From Bugula neritina (taxonomy: Eukaryota > Animalia > Bryozoa): a DNA stretch of 64,000 nt. Where the stretch lies: contig OZ037769.1 of NCBI GenBank assembly GCA_964035545.1, positions 14,352,633-14,416,632 of the forward strand, given 5' to 3'. Under the pieces are notes generated by a model. It did not search any database and had not been told where the DNA came from. It was given only the letters and a program-made list of their open reading frames with translations. This document shows positions 961 to 11,520 of this stretch, piece by piece (the stretch's first letter is position 1; each line of letters starts with the position of its first letter). The position numbers were made by a program, and so were the translations under genes.

Positions 961-2183
961 CTCTTCTTCATGAAGCTAATATAGTTATGAACTAAATGCA
1001 ATGCTTAGCTTGTGTGCCTACAAAGAAAATTGAACTTGTAGTGAGGACCACAGTCTTATCTATTTCTGTTGTAGGCTACAGCAATAGATAAGGTTAGTGA
1101 CTATGTAAATAAGCCTTAGCAATGTGATGCAATTGATCTGGAATTGGTTTGAGGCCTCTTTCTAGCTACCCTAACAACTGAGCTGTTCATGGAGAAGAAA
1201 TTCAGAGCTAACATGATTGATTGGTATATGCTTGGCATGCCAGGTGAGAAATCTCACGCAATTTTCACAAGATCATCGGACTGCAAACACATTCAAGTTT
1301 TGAAATGTATAGAGCTCATGTACAATGTTATAGAAAATGATGTGAAATATTTCACTTTAATTAGCAGCACGCTTTTGTTGCCACTTTTCACTAGCTAACA
1401 AATTCAATTAAAATAAAAGAAAATAATTGTGATAATATTATATCTTACATTATATTTCCTAAATTTCACAAAGTTCTTCCTTACTATAATTTGCTCAACT
1501 CTGTTATTAAGTTCCAGCTCAGTGTAAATGCCTGCAAGACAGCAAGATTTCCCAACTAAAATTTAAAATCTTTGCTATTTTGAAATACAACAGAGTACAA
1601 TAATAGTCAATTAATTGCATGTCGTTTTATTTTAAAAAAGCCCAGCATAAAGCATTGCTGCGAAGCTATTCATAATATTTTCACAAAAGCGTTACATAAA
1701 CAATTAAAATAATTTTTTGAAATTTTTAAAGTTACATGCATGCAATTACTCAGCGTTATATTTCATAAAATTTAAATTTTCCCAACTATAGTTAAATGCA
1801 TGTTTTATCGCCTAATATAGCTCATATTTTTGCGCAAAAAATACCCAACCAAAATTCATAACACCATATATTATATAATTCATTTAATTTGTTTTATTGT
1901 AACTTTTTGCCTTGACTTATAAAAATGTTATTCTGGTTTGCCTGAGAAAGTGCTCTGTAAAGGTGACAACTCCCGACGTGGCTACTATACCCTGCTAATA
2001 GTAGTTAGCCTACAATATTTAGTAAGGAAGAAGTTGTAATGTGGCAAATAAGGCGCATAACTACGTGATGCTGCAAAATGATTAGTCTATGCCAGCCAAT
2101 CACATTATAAGACCAGTTTGACCATGGACTGAAGTAGCAGTAGAAGCATTGCACTATAAGATTTAGCTTGTTTCATAATCATA

Positions 2184-2963
2184 ATGATTGTCACAAACTT
2201 AGTAGTAGTAATATCCACACTGTTGGTAGTACCAGCATTTGCTGCTATTATTTCCGATTCAAAATCTGTGCAGCAAGAAATCTTTAGCTATGACCTGAAA
2301 ATTCGAATTCTAGAAAGACGAATCATGTCTGAATGTCCAGCAGGAACCACTTTGCAACCTCCTCAGTCGAAAGGGATCTCAGGAAGTCTAGACGATCAGC
2401 TACAGGCAAAGAAATTAGCCTACTCGGCGTTGTGGAGTCAATTGCTGACTTGTCACAACGACAACGTTAAACACGACTTGTCACCCACCATTCCGACCAC
2501 CACAACTCCTCTGCCAACCACCATTCCTCCACCGACACCTCTGGAATGTCTAACCGCTACCAACTTCACACAACCTTGGAGACGAGATCATAACGGCAGT
2601 AACGTCAAACCGGGAGGCCCTCATTCACGGAAAGGATATGCCTGTGACGTACACAACGACACTGCGTGGTTTCGCTTCACCAGTGAAGCAGGCAACAAGA
2701 TGTTAGACTCCTGTCCGGCTTGGCGAAGCTGTGGTGGTGAATATTCGTACTGGAGTGGAGATAAAATGCCTACGGAAGTCGGAGTTGCCAAGTTTGTAAA
2801 GACGTCATACACGTTAGAGAGTGGAAAGTGCAAAGAATCGGTTTGGCCAATGGAAGTCATAAGATGCTCTACTGATTCAGATCATGACTTTATTTATAAA
2901 ATGTATTATAGAAACTCTGCTGCCAATCATACTTGCTCTATATCATTCTGTGGCATGGTGTAA
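2184..2963 (+). CDS. Intronless secreted protein: signal peptide, helical N-domain, Thr/Pro linker, UMOD/GP2/OIT3-like D8C domain (paralogue 1)
   Basis: 259-aa ORF; hydrophobic N-terminus; motifs ECL...PWR, YACD...WFRF...AG.KM..SCP...SCG...W....P..VG, V..C...FIY...C..FCG typical of D8C; AATAAA at 2979-2984. Confidence 0.85.
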   Translation: MIVTNLVVVISTLLVVPAFAAIISDSKSVQQEIFSYDLKIRILERRIMSECPAGTTLQPPQSKGISGSLDDQLQAKKLAYSALWSQLLTCHNDNVKHDLSPTIPTTTTPLPTTIPPPTPLECLTATNFTQPWRRDHNGSNVKPGGPHSRKGYACDVHNDTAWFRFTSEAGNKMLDSCPAWRSCGGEYSYWSGDKMPTEVGVAKFVKTSYTLESGKCKESVWPMEVIRCSTDSDHDFIYKMYYRNSAANHTCSISFCGMV

Positions 2964-4999
2964 TTGTTATTCATACGAAATAAAATCTGTTTTTTTCTGC
3001 CGTAAACCTACTATTTGAAAAGATTTATTAAAAATTTCACCTAATCATTCATTTATTGTAAATATTACTGGACTACGACTGTATAGGTGTGAAATTTCAG
3101 GCAATGATCATTCTATTTGTGTAAAACTGCAGTTCAACTTTAAATTCAAAATCATGCAATCAACATCTGCATGGAATAAATGGGAAAAGATTTGGCTAAC
3201 CAAAATATGTTCTTTACACATAATGTTGGGGTCAAGATGAAAAGTTAGTTTGGAGCAAGATCAATGTTTGAGGCATGACATACTTTATCATTCATAACAC
3301 AATGTCAACTCATGCATATAATAAAGATTTGGAAGCAGTAAAACAACTGGTGATTATAAGACAAATTTATGAAATTATCATTCAAACTAGGTGAGAGGAG
3401 ACAGGTGTGATAGCATGGGCTTTATGTCACCCAGTTGAACTCCTTGTTAATTGAAACTATAGGCCTGCATGTTTTGTATAACTACAGAATAGAAACCTAG
3501 TAAAATTGTTATATTTGACAGTGTAAGCTCTTGCTGTATGCCATAATATGGCTAAATAATAAGATCAGATGTTAATTTAGTCTATATATGTTTATAGTGA
3601 AAGATCTGCATGGGATATGACTGCAGAGTTAATGGTATAAAATAATAAAAACTCACAAAGTCAATTATGTAAGATTTTCTGTAAGATAGAGTGAGTTCTC
3701 AATGCACTACATTCAGCTTTCGAGGAGCTGAGTTGACTCCACATCTCTAAGAAATGAAATGAACTTGGCTATGATTGTCCTTCATTGAAGTACAATAGCC
3801 AAAATGTCATAAAAATAAAACAAACAGGCTTTAAATTATTGTTTTTTAAATGAAGGTTTCATCTACAATAAAAAAGTTAGTTTAGTTTTAAAATTTCAAG
3901 CTAAAGATATAATAACTTCAGCCAGATATCGTTTAGTAACAAAGGAATTGAAATATAAAATTATAAATGTTTAAATGCTGCATTTATTATTAGCACTATA
4001 ACAATATCTAGTGGTATGTTAGACTTGTGAATAAACTTAGTTTAAAGTGAGCTAATAAATTTGGAAAATTTTGCAATAAAAGAATTCAAACTGTCACAAT
4101 ACATTATGTTATATAGTATAATATCATAGATTTACTATAAATGAAGTGAGAGGATAACTTCAAGGAAATCAACTAAGGTGCCTCAGGTAATGGTAGAGAA
4201 AACAACCATAATATTATGTAATTCAAACAAGTTATAAATTAAATATTTAAATCACATAAATATAAAAATTTAAAAAGCATAAGACAAGAATTCATGTTAT
4301 CGAGGATATGTGTTAATAGAAAATTGGATCTAAATTGGGAACTTGCTTGCTAGAAAAAATACCTAGCAAAGCTACTTTATATCACAAGTGCATGTTGTTT
4401 GTGCTAAAACAATGTCATCAGAAAAGCAGATAAAGTGCTTGGCGTATCTAACTTCCTCTGTCATTTTGGATGTATAACAGTTTTTTATAGTTAGTTTTTA
4501 AAAATTATATTAAGCAATTCAGGCAGGTGAAAGATGCACAAGTTTTAGGATTAAAACATCAATTGTTATCAAGGGTCTCAGAATTGCTACATATGAAAAG
4601 CACATATAGGGTAGTAGCTACACGTTCTCAAATCTATATGAATATTTCTACAATTTTGACCTGTAGCATTATTATGGAGCAGTGGTATTTTGAGAGTTAC
4701 CATCAGTTTACAGTTTCTGGACTGGCTTCACTGATTTATTGTATACTTGCAAAAAATTAACCAACCTTTCTACCTTGTATAAGCATCATGAAACTGGAAA
4801 TCAAGGTTAGAAAAAAAACTTGATTGCAAGCTAAAACGTTGGCAATCAATAAAATCAGAATTCCAATATGTACAAAAATTGCATCACAAAGTTATTGCTA
4901 CTAGTTTGTTCTCATTCAAGTGATCAAAGTATAATTTCAAATAGTAAATATTGCATGTATGTAAGCCAATAAATACAAAATTATACCTGCATAAATGAG

Positions 5000-5260
5000 A
5001 ATATTGCATAATTTGTCCAAACTCGTTGATTACAATAGACCAAAAGGTTGCTTTTCTGCTTTAGATAATAATAAACGCTGGTGCCCTTTAATACATGCAA
5101 AATGTAATGGGTATTTACGAAGAGATAAAAATGTTATAATAACATTTCAACGAGCACGTTCTTTTCTTTTTTTAAATATGACCGGAAAAGGTTTCGAGAG
5201 TGTGACTCAGTGTCAGTATAGTCTCTTGACAGTGACACAACTAAAAGTAAACCATTGATT
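5000..5260 (+). promoter_or_regulatory. Candidate MINDY promoter / non-coding first exon
   Basis: Local CpG-bearing patch with an ETS-like ACCGGAA at 5181-5187, followed by the ACT/TAG low-complexity tract that follows other TSS-like patches in this window. Inference only. Confidence 0.3.
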
Positions 5261-5385
5261 GACATCATTGAATTAAAGCCAAAGATTATAATTTGTGCTT
5301 GGGCTGAGTTATAATTACATAGATGAATCATATATATTAACTTTTAGTTTTAGGCAAGACTTGAACTACAATTTCATGTTCATAT

Positions 5386-5660
5386 TGAACTACTACTACT
5401 AGTAGAGTAGACACTGACAGTAGACGTAGTACACTTAGCCTTACAGGTACTACTACTACTAGACTACTACTACTACTAGTAGACGTAGTACTACTACTAC
5501 TACTAGTAGTGGTAGTAGTTCAGTGTGTGTTACTAGTACTAGTACTACTACTACTATTAGTGGCAGTACTCTCAGTCTCATTATTGATTATGTTCTGCTA
5601 CTACTAGTACTACTAGTTGAGTAGTAGTAGTAGTAGTAGTACACTGTACAGTACTAACTC
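5386..5660. repeat. (ACT)n/(AGT)n low-complexity tract with strand switches
   Basis: Runs of ctactactac and gtagtagtag alternate through ACTAGT/AGTACT junctions. Confidence 0.85.
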
Positions 5661-6537
5661 TAAGTACTTATAAACATAGTTATTGTTAATGTTATTGTAC
5701 TTATTTTAATTTATAATAACAATTATTATTATAGTCATAATGGTTGCGATTAGTAACACTAACTGGATCCTTTAAAGAATCCCTGACACACTTTACTTAT
5801 ATAGCATGAAAATATTCATCTATATCTTAGCTATCAATTAAGCATTCCTTTAAGGGTGGATGGCTATACTATTTCATTTTATAACAACTTTAGTGCATGC
5901 ATGTCCAAAAAACTTTCGGATTTCTAAGCTCTCAGTGCACACGTATTACGCCGGTTTCCGGTTGGCTTCGAGTCCTAGTTACTATATAACTAATAGTAAT
6001 AATTGCATACTTTCGCAGCGTGTTATTTTTAGCCACTGCAACACACAGATAAATCACTATACTGACATAAATTTTAAAACACAGAGTACAACAAATGCTC
6101 AATGAAAAAAACAAATGATACCATTTTATTATTGATATTAGAAGCTAAAGTTACTTCCGTTAGAAATTTTGAGCATCGGAAAAATGAAATAGCCTCACCC
6201 TCACGATGTAATTAGAACGGGTGGCTAAGTACGGTGATAACACGATATTGTTACAAGAAATTAGCTAAATCCAACGAGTGGCAAACTTTTATATAAAACA
6301 TTACAAATAATTGCATATTCAATTATGTAACTTATTACGCTTCCAAATAGATTATCATTACCGTAACCGGATACTACCAATATAACCCGTGCCTAGTAGT
6401 ACTACTACTAGTAGTAGACTAGTAGTCGCTCGCTATCTATATAAATTCGATTTCATATTCATATTCATATTGCCATTGGACTCTAATGAACAAACTTATT
6501 ACCTATATTACTAGTTACACTTGCACTTACTGTCGAC

Positions 6538-7965
6538 ATGACTACACGAATGGCTTCAAGTTCTAAAGGCAAATGCAAAAGAAGAGTGTGTGAAGCTGCA
6601 ATGTGTTCGTACAAGGAAAAACACATGTTTAAATGGCCTGCTGATACTCATACTGTGTGTGGTGAAAAATGGACCAAGTTTGTCAATACGAAAAGAAAAA
6701 ACTTTCTGCCTGATAACAACTCTCGTTTGTGTTTTCAGCATTTTGGTGATGAACAATTTACAAATATGGGTATGTATAAAGCAAAACTCATTAACATGTA
6801 AGTGAATAACTCACTCAAACTCATAGTCATAGTGATACTGACTTAGTGATTGTGATAGAATTAGACGATAATGATAGTTTTTTTAATGTTGATTTTTAAC
6901 AATAAGTATAACTATAACTATTAAGTATTACTACAAGTTGGTATAAGTCAATAGGATTGTCATGACCGTGTTGATTCAATTTCATGTGACTATGACATAA
7001 ACTTGCAAGTACAAGTTTGCATTTATGATTTACACGATAACCATTATTGTAAGGAAATTTATTTATAATGGCGATAAAATGAAAGACTTATGATTATCAG
7101 AATGTGTCATAGTCACTTGGATACATACCATTAATATTATGATTCATACGCACTGATACTCATGCTATGAGTATGATACTAGTAATGGTGCCCATCATCA
7201 ATACCAGTAAAAATTAATGGTAAATATTGTTCACTTAGCTTATTGAAAGAATAAAAATTCATTGTCTTTGATTTACTCTTTAGATTGCATTTAGAGAAAA
7301 CAGCAGTCCCAACTATTCATTTAGTGGAAACTGAGGGTGCAACTGGATGCACTCCATTAACTCCTCGGAAACAAAGTCAGCAGGCGGCCACTATCACACC
7401 TAAAGAAGCTCGCTGGTTAAAAAGATCAAACCCTGGTTTTCTGTAAGGATTATAATATTGAAAATGCGATCTTGAGCAATAAAATTGAAATATGATATAG
7501 ACAGCAATTGAGATTTTCTGCAGCTGTTTCAATAATACTTTTCCATTTACCTTCATATATAATAATATTTTAGAGCTTTGCCAAGTCAAACTAAAAAACC
7601 AGCTCTCAATCTTAAGCCAGAAAAGAAGGGCCTACAGAAAGGAATAGGACACAATAAATATGTGCAAACACCTAAAAGGATGCAGAAAAAGATTAGAAGC
7701 AAAGCTGTTCAATGCTGGTATATAGAAATATGGCGAAATAGTATTGTTCACTTAGCTCAAAAACTGAATTCATAGCTTTTCTCCATATTTATTTTTATTT
7801 AAAATGCATGTTCTAATGCAACAACAAAAAAAACAAATATTTTTGTGTAATGGAAATAATATTTTTAATTTTCCACCTAAAGGTGTGTCAAAAATAAATT
7901 TGGACAATATATCTACTTGTAGTCTCAGTTTCCATTGAAATGTAAATATTCGTTTTCACTGTAGA
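6538..7965 (+). CDS. THAP zinc-finger protein (~187 aa) inside the Kolobok element; exons 6538-6797, 7284-7442, 7574-7717, stop probably formed on splicing to 7965
   Basis: C2CH motif CEAAMC..FKWP..W..LCFQHF; exon 2 supplies the THAP AVPTI box (LHLEKTAVPTIH); phase-2 GT-AG junctions are consistent; exon 3 ends RSKAVQC. The 3' end is uncertain. Confidence 0.8.
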
Positions 7966-8451
7966 GCAGCTGTATGTTTGGTTTTGTTGGTACTTTATTA
8001 GAGCCATAAATAGCAATGTGAAAACAATAAATAGCAATAAATAAAACAATATATTGGTAAAAATATGTAAAAAGTTATACTATGTCACAAAGTTTCATAA
8101 AAACAATATTGTTATATTATATTATATTACATTGCATAAGATATTCTAGTGTACTAGGAATATTGCAATACCTGATTGCTCTACATAACTAAGTAGTGAA
8201 GTAAATTCTATTTGTTGAATCAAAATTCAAGCATTGTAGAATATGATCTTAGAGTCACTTGAAAAGTTCAGCGCAAAAATAGTCACTATATTGAAGTATA
8301 TTCACCATTATTGCAACTCAAACTCAACGGTAAATTAATTTCAAAGGTCAGGGAGATTGCAAATAATGAGGTTTATTCTCATAGTAAGCTGTACACACTA
8401 CAAGAGGCAGTAGCAACTGACTGCTACTAAAAATCACCAGAGTGTTAATGT

Positions 8452-10164
8452 TCATAAATCTTCATTGTACACGAATTTGCTGAACATCCATTCAGCAAAT
8501 TCTTCCTCATCACCAGTTGGGGGGAATGTAGCTTGCACCCAATCATATAAGCAAGCTGGTAAAGGGCGTCTCACCTTTTTTAATATCTGGAAACAGCCAG
8601 AACACCAAAAACCGGTAGCTGCAGAACCTTTTTATAGTGTTGAGAGAATGGGCCTTCTCATCAAACAAATCATCTACCAAAATAAATGATTGACTAAATA
8701 ATCAAGTAAGACTATCTAGAAAAACTAACAATGACAGTTACTGATATACAGTAGCAATTGACTAACCATGATATCTCAGGTAGCTGCTGTATGCAACTTC
8801 TAATACAGCTGGTTGCGTCAATTGCTGTACTCCCGGGTGCTGTGTTATACATTCCATGCTGCTATCTAATCGAAGGTTTGCAGCATGATCACGGCAACAA
8901 ACAGACTGTTCCACTGTAGGCTGATTTTGGCAGCGGTGGCAAGTGCACCACTCCGTGGCTGGCCTTATATTTTTCTACAAAACAAACAAGCTTTTCTAAA
9001 AACGTTATTACCAGTATCATCCACATTAAGTCCATTAATTACTGTGTCTAAATTTGTTTCCTGTATTTTTCTTTGTATTGAAAATTGAGTCCAATGAGGC
9101 TGAAGTTTGAAAATACTTTAAAATCATGGGTTTTAAAATATTCCAAGTTTGCATTACTGTTCAAACTATTTTTATATTTATAGTTGAAAATTAATTAGAT
9201 TTTTTATATTAAAACAAACTCATAATTTTTGCTATGAAATAAACTAATTTTCAGAGATTTTAAAATATTTTATTGTTGTTAGTACTATATGTTATACTAT
9301 AAAAGCAGAAATTCAGAGAAATAGGGGGCTTAGAAATAAAATACTAAATGCTATCATCGTGAATGCAAGTTTGACATGATTATGTATGTGATTAACTTAT
9401 TTTGTTAAGGATCGGTATAACCACAATTACAATAAAAGTGAATAATAATTATCATTATTATGCATTTATAAAAATACAGTCTTTCCCTTGACTTAAATTA
9501 TCAGGTAAATCTAACTACAAATAATTAATACTAATACCTGTATTGGTAGTAGTAATAACAAAATTAGTATTGATCAAATATTTAATTACTTGACTGGAAT
9601 TTGTAATCATTAAATTTAATGATTATCACTTTATTATTAATAATATTATATAAACCGATAGCAATCATCAAATATTTAGCTTGTAATTTGATATCATGCT
9701 TGCTCTAAAGCTTTAGTAGCACAAAACTCAGCTATATTAACTAATTAAGCCAGGATCAATACGAGCATTGGCATTGAGCATTGGAATTACGATTACAAAA
9801 TGAAAATGAAATATTATAATTATAATAATTTATAACTTATACTAGCTTATACTTATAACTTAAAGTTAAAGTATTACTATTAGTATTAGTATTAGTATTA
9901 CGGTATTAGTAACACTATAGTTTATAAAATTAAATCGTACTGATACTGTAAAATTATAAATATTATCACCTGTTGCTCATCAGTAACAGTAAAATCCTTG
10001 TCATGACTATCATCTCCATTTTCATCTTGATACGTAAACGGCTCAAACTGATAGCCCATTACTTCAGAAATCTCAGTGACAGCGTGAGTGTGATTGTCAT
10101 AGTCATACTCATTGCGATTCTCACTGTGCTCTAAGTATTCTTCGTCAGAGCCAGATATGTTCAT
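8452..10164 (-). pseudogene. KolX / P2X7 intracellular ballast-like Zn-cysteine protein (~208 aa), exons 9970-10164, 8767-8974, 8452-8673; 2-nt frameshift near 8570
   Basis: Exon 1 acidic with GYQFEP; exon 2 WCTCHRCQNQPTVEQSVCCRD...ECITQHP; exon 3 RFCSYRFLVFWLFPDIKKG/(shift)/RPLPACLYDWVQATFP..DL*. Splice phases 0 and 1 are consistent; spliced length 625 nt is 2 short of a multiple of 3. Confidence 0.85.
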
Positions 10165-11520
10165 ATTGATATCGTATTTATGTTATTTCTGTATTAGGTT
10201 TATCTTTATCACAATTACACTGCACAGACTCGGACACGGTAAGTTGGTAGCTATGTATTTATTGCCGCGAAATTTGTTTATGAAATAAAACCTAAATTCC
10301 ACAAAAAAATACTAATTGGGGGGCTAGACAGACGTCCGATAAATTAAAAATGCTAAAACTAAGGTTACATGCAACGGAAAATATAGCCTATACTTATTTT
10401 CCGAATGTCTTACAGGCGGCGTTTCCATCTATTTCTCGCAACTGCGGTGTAATACGTCACAGAAGGGCGAAAAAAATTCTCGAAGTTTTTTGGACATGCA
10501 TGCACTAAAACTGTTATAAAACAAAATTGCTTAGACCTGAAACCCTAAAAGAGTGTTAAAATGATAGCTAAGACATAGATGAATATTTTCATGCTATATA
10601 AGTAAAGTGTGTCAGGAATTCTTTAAATCACACTATAAACTAGTCATTTAATTTTATCATTATCAATGTCATTATGATTATGATAAAATGATTAATGAAT
10701 TAATTATTTACTATTACTATTAGTATTTCATAATTTATTGTTAGTAAATGTTGATATTGTCATTGTGTAATTGATTAATTCTCAATCTGATTCCGACAGC
10801 ATTTAATTATTTATTTAAGATATGTGATAATATAGATATGAGAATAATAATTATTATTTATAAAAAATGTTGTTTTTAATACTAATTATAATATCAAATT
10901 CATTATATGCTAATTATTTGTGTAAAACTAAGAGTAAGTAGATTTACTCCTAGTCTTAGTGATCATCAGGGATCACTCTGGGGTATTATTAGACTATCAT
11001 TACCAGTACCTTAAGTAGTTTAACTATGAGTATCACTATTTCATATTATAATAACTTTAGTTTATCTAAATTTTAATACCTATGCTGACAGTAGATATTT
11101 AATATTAGCTAAACTAATACATGATCTTATACTTGTAGTTATAGTTTGTGATCATATTCATAAATTTGATAATGATGGCTATTTTTAGCAATGTTAATCC
11201 TAGTTATGGTTGCCCCTAGTTCCACTTAATTTTATAGTTAGCAGTTTTGCATCCATTTTTATGGTGCACGTATCCATATGCTAAAAAGAAATTCCAGTTA
11301 TACAGCATGTTTTTTAATCATAAAAATTAGATTGAACATCAATTTTTACAATCTATGCATTTTAGACATTTAGAAATAGTTTTAAGTATCTACTCAAGTG
11401 AAACTTTACTTGGGTAAAACTTTGTTGCAGTTTTGAAATTTAAGGTTTTTGTTTGTTGCGCAAGCCATTGAAGTGCTTTGAATTTTAAATATTTCCTCAA
11501 CGATTAGGTGATTGCTTAGT

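Follow-up and report, generated by a model that had tools for sequence, protein, structure and literature searches.

The question raised by this locus is whether a transposon that carries two gene bodies and no catalytic exons of a transposase has been kept in that form by selection or is simply the remainder of a larger element. The element lies in the bryozoan Bugula neritina, within a stretch of 64,000 nucleotides (C5:14352633-14416632 of the assembly, hereafter the window), and its copy there is 4,847 bp long. One of its genes encodes a THAP zinc-finger domain; the other, which faces it, encodes KolX, a protein resembling the C-terminal ballast of the P2X7 receptor. The original prediction regarded the element as a structured two-gene lineage "rather than a random deletion derivative". 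Our analysis points the other way. With a probability of roughly 80%, we consider the element to be a non-autonomous, internally deleted copy of a Kolobok DNA transposon of the Kol0 lineage, whose reading frames are drifting neutrally. What the locus contains is an ordinary product of deletion, non-autonomous and derived from a transposon of a familiar type; it is no novel system of regulation. A clean deletion relative to a longer sibling, the variety of junctions within the family and the neutral character of the changes that followed the deletions all speak against the predicted distinction.

A search with KolX exon 2 matched the genome at exactly 23 places with at least 94% identity, and all of these copies were retrieved and aligned. 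Elements of the family measure 4.5-4.9 kb, and one 7.4-kb copy, L006 (C8:9090471-9097889; 7,419 bp), contains an additional 2.5 kb with transposase exons in its middle. The layout of the window copy, THAP plus KolX with no DDE exons, is found in 22 of the 23 long copies, so the expectation that further copies of the same THAP-only structure would exist was borne out. Short derivatives are few: a 1,152-bp copy (L005), another of about 400 bp, and some ends that stand alone. Miniature inverted-repeat transposable elements (MITEs) are short (less than about 800 bp), non-coding and present in high copy number, whereas the window element has its full 4,847 bp, two gene bodies and about 23 long copies.

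The window copy aligns colinearly with L006 up to one junction and again beyond it, and this junction corresponds to a clean 2,555-bp deletion of the transposase exons:

8184-8190: class A deletion junction, L006 element position 2390 joined to 4946, with short imperfect microhomology

The left breakpoint of this class is situated within transposase intron 3 and the right one about 46 bp past the transposase stop codon. Among the deleted copies, the junctions are distributed as follows:

Class A, 2390 to 4946: 8 copies, including the window copy
Class B, 2150 to 4997, 3-bp microhomology: 8 copies
Unique junctions: 6 copies

There are at least eight distinct junctions, and the matches flanking them overlap by 1-7 bp. 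Across the junction classes, the arms that were kept measure 2150-2799 bp on the left (mean 2444) and 2167-2614 bp on the right (mean 2333). As the THAP exons are located within the first 1.95 kb of the element and KolX within its last 2.2 kb, both genes survive such central deletions without any selection. The junction of one copy, L017, clips the last KolX codons.

Central deletions are known to arise during gap repair after P-element excision, when synthesis from both ends is interrupted. The central position of the deletions, the microhomology and the symmetric retention of the two arms lead us to infer the same kind of interrupted repair synthesis in this family. In the longer parent, a gene for a THAP-DDE transposase would have faced the KolX gene convergently. 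After excision, repair synthesis would have copied inward from both ends and stopped early, and the ends would have been joined at a short microhomology, with the loss of all transposase exons that follow exon 3. The first 2.4 kb or so, with the promoter and the THAP exons, and the last 2.4 kb or so, with KolX, would have survived simply by their closeness to the ends. As both terminal inverted repeats (TIRs) are kept, a transposase acting in trans can cut and paste such a copy at TTAA sites, and the deleted form has moved several times, eight copies having the class A junction. The two frames would now be relics in neutral drift, the THAP stump of the window copy being open and its KolX frameshifted. 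Trees built from the left and right halves of the copies disagree, since the window copy, L013 and L015 combine a left half of class A type with a right half of class B/L006 type. This disagreement fits template switching between copies during repair.

With regard to its classification, the window element has no DDE exons of its own and belongs to Kolobok because of its ends and its deletion relation to L006. The earlier assignment to Kolobok holds. Kolobok termini follow the pattern 5'-RR...YY-3' (PMC9587614), and all copies of the family have AG...CT termini. The TTAA target-site duplication and the long TIRs were found where they had been predicted, and a repeat search returned one outstanding inverted pair (5771-5915 and 10483-10627), with arms of 145 nt that are 86% complementary. 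In the 216-Mb genome, a 34-nt pattern made up of TTAA and the terminus has 66 matches, and its reversed control has none. All copies with both ends aligned (21/21, the window copy included) are flanked by TTAA on either side within unrelated DNA, as is the 1.15-kb copy L005; these copies are thus separate insertions. The ends and the non-coding parts of the window copy are the following:

5772-5775: left TTAA target-site duplication (sequence and copy alignment)
5776-5915, plus strand: left TIR, begins AG (145-nt arm match; terminus pattern search)
5916-6537, plus strand: upstream region of the THAP gene, CpG-rich, putative promoter
8191-8451: spacer between the 3' ends, consisting of DNA past the stop codon of the transposase and of the 3' flank of KolX (TTTATT at 8372)
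10165-10482, minus strand: CpG-rich region upstream of KolX, putative promoter
10483-10622, minus strand: right TIR, ends CT (arm match; copy alignment)
10623-10626: right TTAA target-site duplication (sequence and copy alignment)

The CpG-bearing character of the two upstream regions near the TIRs was confirmed, with observed/expected ratios of 1.31 for THAP and 1.57 for KolX versus 0.48 for the whole window. The poly(A) signals had been placed at the right positions (AATAAA at 8026 and 8036, TTTATT at 8372), but in the AT-rich window such hexamers turn up about 1.6 times per kb on each strand, which is about chance, and therefore carry no weight. TAG/TAC-rich, microsatellite-like runs are present at window positions 5531-5643, in the left flank, and 6394-6426, inside the element upstream of THAP, and they give many short inverted matches.

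The two genes are convergent and multi-exonic, as had been read from the sequence, with three exons each and GT/AG borders. The gene models were searched exon by exon. The THAP gene is composed of:

6538-6797, plus strand: transposase exon 1, THAP zinc-finger domain, with a 6-bp in-frame insertion at 6644-6649 (PF05485 match)
7284-7442, plus strand: transposase exon 2, AVPTIH box (AG/GT borders in 23/23 copies)
7574-7717, plus strand: transposase exon 3, basic stretch (donor GT at 7718)
7718-8183, plus strand: remnant of transposase intron 3, containing the AATAAA hexamers (colinear with the L006 element up to 2390)

The exons are joined in phase 2 by GT/AG introns, and read-through of exon 3 into the intron leads to an in-frame stop at 7773-7775. 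Exon 1 scores 23.5 bits against the Pfam THAP model PF05485, which is below the cut-off of 23.9, and the sibling L009, which is free of the insertion, scores 26.7 bits; the lower score of the window copy is explained by its 6-bp insertion. The AVPTIH box of exon 2 resembles the AVPTIF box of THAP domains, and Kolobok transposases carry an N-terminal THAP domain (PMC6004289). The THAP gene corresponds to the N-terminus of the transposase, in line with the published structure of Kolobok. Its frame is open over exons 1-3 in the window copy and in 14 of the 23 copies overall, and is broken in nine. In two copies, the invariant THAP tryptophan is replaced by a stop codon, and in three copies another tryptophan of the domain is replaced by arginine.

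The 6-bp in-frame insertions were considered as a possible sign of frame conservation. This was rejected, as 6 bp is also the modal insertion length in introns. Across the 23 aligned copies, small insertions show a sharp peak at this length, with 24 events, whereas those of 5 bp and 7 bp number four and three. Most of the 6-bp insertions are tandem duplications of the adjacent hexamer, several of them with the junction base changed to its complement. They resemble the footprints that a hairpin-forming, hAT-like transposon with target duplications of 6 bp leaves on excision; the alternative is templated end-joining.

The KolX gene is composed of:

9970-10164, minus strand: KolX exon 1, acidic N-terminus, ATG at 10164
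8767-8974, minus strand: KolX exon 2, Cys-rich part of the ballast-like domain (P2RX7_C positions 78-116, E 0.006)
8452-8673 (coding 8673-8455), minus strand: KolX exon 3 including the stop codon, frameshifted (copy alignment)

The matches to the Pfam model P2RX7_C are colinear, with 17.0 bits for exon 2 at model positions 78-116 and 17.5 bits for exon 3 of an intact sibling at positions 133-185, each of them alone being below the cut-off of 23.5 bits. Seven cysteine residues in the exon translations were paired by eye with the conserved KolX set, as in the second gene of Kol0. That lineage encodes a transposase and KolX, and KolX has a P2X7 ballast fold (Kojima and Bao 2022, PMC9587614). The likeness to the P2X7 tail stated in the original prediction is thus correct, and the pairing of transposase and KolX is not new, having been published in 2022 (PMC9587614).

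In the window copy, a (GA)3 run at about 8569-8572 has lost 2 bp, and the reading frame is shifted shortly ahead of the conserved C-terminal motif. KolX is a pseudogene here. The copy is not intact, given this frameshift together with the insertion and the sub-cut-off Pfam score of the THAP exon. Among the 23 copies, the KolX frame is open in 14 and broken in nine, including the window copy. The 2-bp deletion is common to the window copy, L001 and L003, and might have demonstrated continued transposition of an element with a dead KolX. This was also rejected, as the right half of the window copy belongs to another clade than those of L001 and L003 and the (GA)3 run is prone to slippage; the deletion is thus a case of recurrent slippage and not of common inheritance.

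The selection tests were carried out by counting variants against the majority base at each site, with a neutral expectation derived from the element's own non-coding mutation spectrum (76% nonsynonymous). Variants common to several copies are depleted in exons (0.018 per site, versus 0.048 in non-coding DNA; odds ratio 0.36, p = 1.6e-6), which reflects constraint in the ancestral, presumably autonomous, lineage. Private variants amount to 0.095 per site in exons versus 0.108 in non-coding DNA (p = 0.22). Only the changes within classes A and B can postdate the deletions. These changes, which are small in number and were counted without placement on a tree, comprise 7 synonymous and 16 nonsynonymous ones in THAP (adjusted omega 0.72, P = 0.31), and 4 synonymous and 19 nonsynonymous ones in KolX (adjusted omega 1.5, not significant). 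In both genes, the changes after the deletions fit neutrality, and the predicted ratio of nonsynonymous to synonymous change (dN/dS) below 1 was not significantly supported in either. Copies with both frames open are found mainly in class B. With a mean divergence of 0.38%, this class is so young that open frames are expected by default and say little.

The transposase was sought both in the window copy and in its sibling. No DDE remnant was detected in the window element by tblastn with 14 Kolobok-type transposases and with sister-family exons, the THAP exon being the only match, in agreement with what had first been noticed. In L006, the 14 transposases show homology at element positions 3308-4635, and the plus-strand frames of its middle contain the second catalytic Asp, a DTWH motif, an H2CH finger and a Glu-containing motif. 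One of these frames, searched against 1.84 billion proteins, retrieved 893 relatives, which include animal proteins of 550-670 residues, one of them with an N-terminal THAP domain. The transposase frames gave only weak matches to MULE, ISL3 and Mutator in Pfam, which has no Kolobok DDE model. A DDD/E transposase with a C/DxxH motif and a zinc finger is thus absent from the window copy and partly present in L006, whose extra segment was found only once in the genome at high identity.

An autonomous partner with matching ends had been anticipated, and none was found in the assembly. L006, the sole DDE-bearing sibling, was rejected for this role. Comparison with a second Kolobok family of the genome, described below, shows that its transposase is short of about 150 residues, among them the first catalytic Asp motif, between the zinc-finger region at the N-terminus and the exon with the second Asp. 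Its KolX is broken as well, by a 1-bp deletion and a stop codon. Two further candidates were discarded: L026, whose ends are 8 kb apart, is an old gutted copy with a nested gypsy-type long terminal repeat (LTR) retrotransposon, and C5:7800422-7801105, which is 84% identical to the DDE exons and might have been a further source of transposase, is a piece of 680 bp interrupted by stop codons. The second Kolobok family is represented by L029 (C5:13487500-13497400), L030 (C6:5889800-5899700), L033 (C1:11881000-11890900) and L034 (C2:21883300-21893200). This family has its own KolX, which is 54-71% identical to that of the window family, and its transposase exons include the first catalytic Asp. 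The first-Asp exon is present at only four genomic loci, all of which belong to the second family (C5 at about 13.49 Mb, C6 at 5.89 Mb, C1 at 11.89 Mb and C2 at 21.89 Mb). The ends of this family were not found in the four loci, the inverted repeats considered as such in L029 and L030 being LTR-like or microsatellite matches.

Several observations weigh against a deletion derivative in neutral drift. All 22 mid-size derivatives (22/22), with at least eight junction classes between them, keep THAP exons 1-3 together with a complete or almost complete KolX; both amplified forms carry the two genes, these being the only forms to have reached eight copies each, and short MITE-like copies are rare. 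The CpG-rich upstream regions are preserved, as are the splice sites, which are intact in all copies present except one, and the within-class variant density is somewhat lower in exons than in non-coding DNA. Besides the 14 copies with an open THAP frame, both frames are open in seven of the eight class B copies. When the private THAP changes of all copies are taken together, a deficit of nonsynonymous changes is observed (adjusted omega 0.49, P = 0.007), to which long branches, possibly predating the deletions, contribute. Furthermore, the gap-repair origin is read from the anatomy of the junctions, and no source of transposase with matching ends was found in the assembly. The rival explanation would be a selected two-gene lineage, in which the THAP stump acts as a repressor on transposase sites near the ends and KolX is kept as an accessory, so that copies retaining both spread or persist better. 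A precedent is provided by KP, an internally deleted P element encoding a THAP-containing type II repressor (bioRxiv 10.1101/2020.10.06.328815). Nevertheless, we consider such a lineage improbable, as the changes within classes A and B bear no mark of purifying selection, KolX is broken in the window copy and the tryptophan residues of the THAP domain are lost in several copies. The open frames of class B are to be expected from its youth, and the symmetric retention of about 2.4 kb per end fits the repair mechanism without selection. A more far-reaching proposal appears to us unlikely. In it, the THAP stump, alone or together with KolX, would limit its own element in the manner of KP, and its carriers would have outcompeted the autonomous parent until the genome had no complete transposase of the family left. 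We therefore retain the neutrally drifting deletion derivative as the preferred explanation.

The deletion derivative has nevertheless been mobile, and the origin of the transposase has to be considered. Two class B copies at different sites are identical, which implies that a transposase acted very recently; its source is either absent from the assembly or another family. Mobilisation by the transposase of the second, more distant Kolobok family, instead of by an unassembled or lost autonomous copy of the window family itself, would agree with the recent movement of the near-identical class B copies and with the restriction of the first-Asp exon to the four second-family loci. In the loci fetched, however, the second family shows no DNA similarity to the window-family element and lacks its terminal 20-mer, its transposase exons are only about 46-61% identical, and no THAP exon like that of the window family is present. 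Autonomous transposon copies are, moreover, often rare, polymorphic or missing from the assembly of one haplotype. Cross-mobilisation thus appears doubtful.

Some further observations were made on the family and its surroundings. L032 (C5:7534239-7535299) is a 1.06-kb fragment corresponding to positions 207-1268 of the L006 element, with 96% identity and neither terminus. Six termini with three mismatches and a common variant tail (C1:10079691, C1:19448395, C3:13923056, C4:22518885, C5:7646405 and C7:7513545) may represent a sister subfamily; no DDE exon matches were found near them. Three copies contain nested gypsy-type LTR retrotransposons, namely L013 with L035 (C5:11697129-11704613), L021 with L036 (C1, about 34840489-34847985), and L026 at positions 1721-7658. 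Two of the three have LTRs of about 300 bp that are 100% identical, and the LTR of one has at least 736 candidate matches in the genome. All three insertion sites fall in one stretch of 475 bp in the region of KolX intron 1 and exon 1.

The family provides a specimen of the decay of a cut-and-paste transposon, with a series of central deletions, mosaic copies, very recent movement and no complete transposase in the assembly. For annotation, it follows that THAP and 'P2X7-like' gene models at the 23 loci are transposon relics and not host genes. Open and broken KolX copies coexist in one genome and constitute natural material for the study of KolX function. Were the repressor explanation true, it would extend the KP paradigm to the Kolobok superfamily, as the first case outside the P element, and KolX would gain a testable role.

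Among known systems, the family is closest in anatomy to Kol0 (Kolobok-1_XT type, PMC9587614), with which it shares the TTAA duplication, the 5'-RR...YY-3' ends, and a transposase gene accompanied by a KolX with conserved cysteines. The sibling L006 also displays the C/DxxH motif, the zinc finger before the last catalytic Glu, and that Glu itself. In contrast to Kol0, the window copy is devoid of any DDE exons and its KolX is frameshifted, and Bryozoa is not among the phyla listed for Kol0 (PMC9587614). Like KP of the Drosophila P element, the window copy is the result of an internal deletion that leaves the N-terminal THAP part as the sole transposase product, with this DNA-binding part open, and the deleted form is the commonest in the genome. 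However, it belongs to another superfamily, carries KolX along and seems to have changed neutrally after the deletion; the likeness is one of anatomy. The Xenopus T2-MITEs (PMC6004289) are likewise non-autonomous Kolobok relatives with TTAA targets, AG termini and a transposase supplied in trans, but they are short, non-coding and highly abundant, whereas the window family comprises about two dozen copies of 4.5-4.9 kb with two gene bodies. Finally, KolX exons 2 and 3 match P2RX7_C colinearly, which relates them to the C-terminal ballast of P2X7 and to zebrafish Nanor, a proposed domesticated KolX. Unlike these, the KolX of the window family is a free-standing transposon gene and neither part of a receptor nor a host gene.

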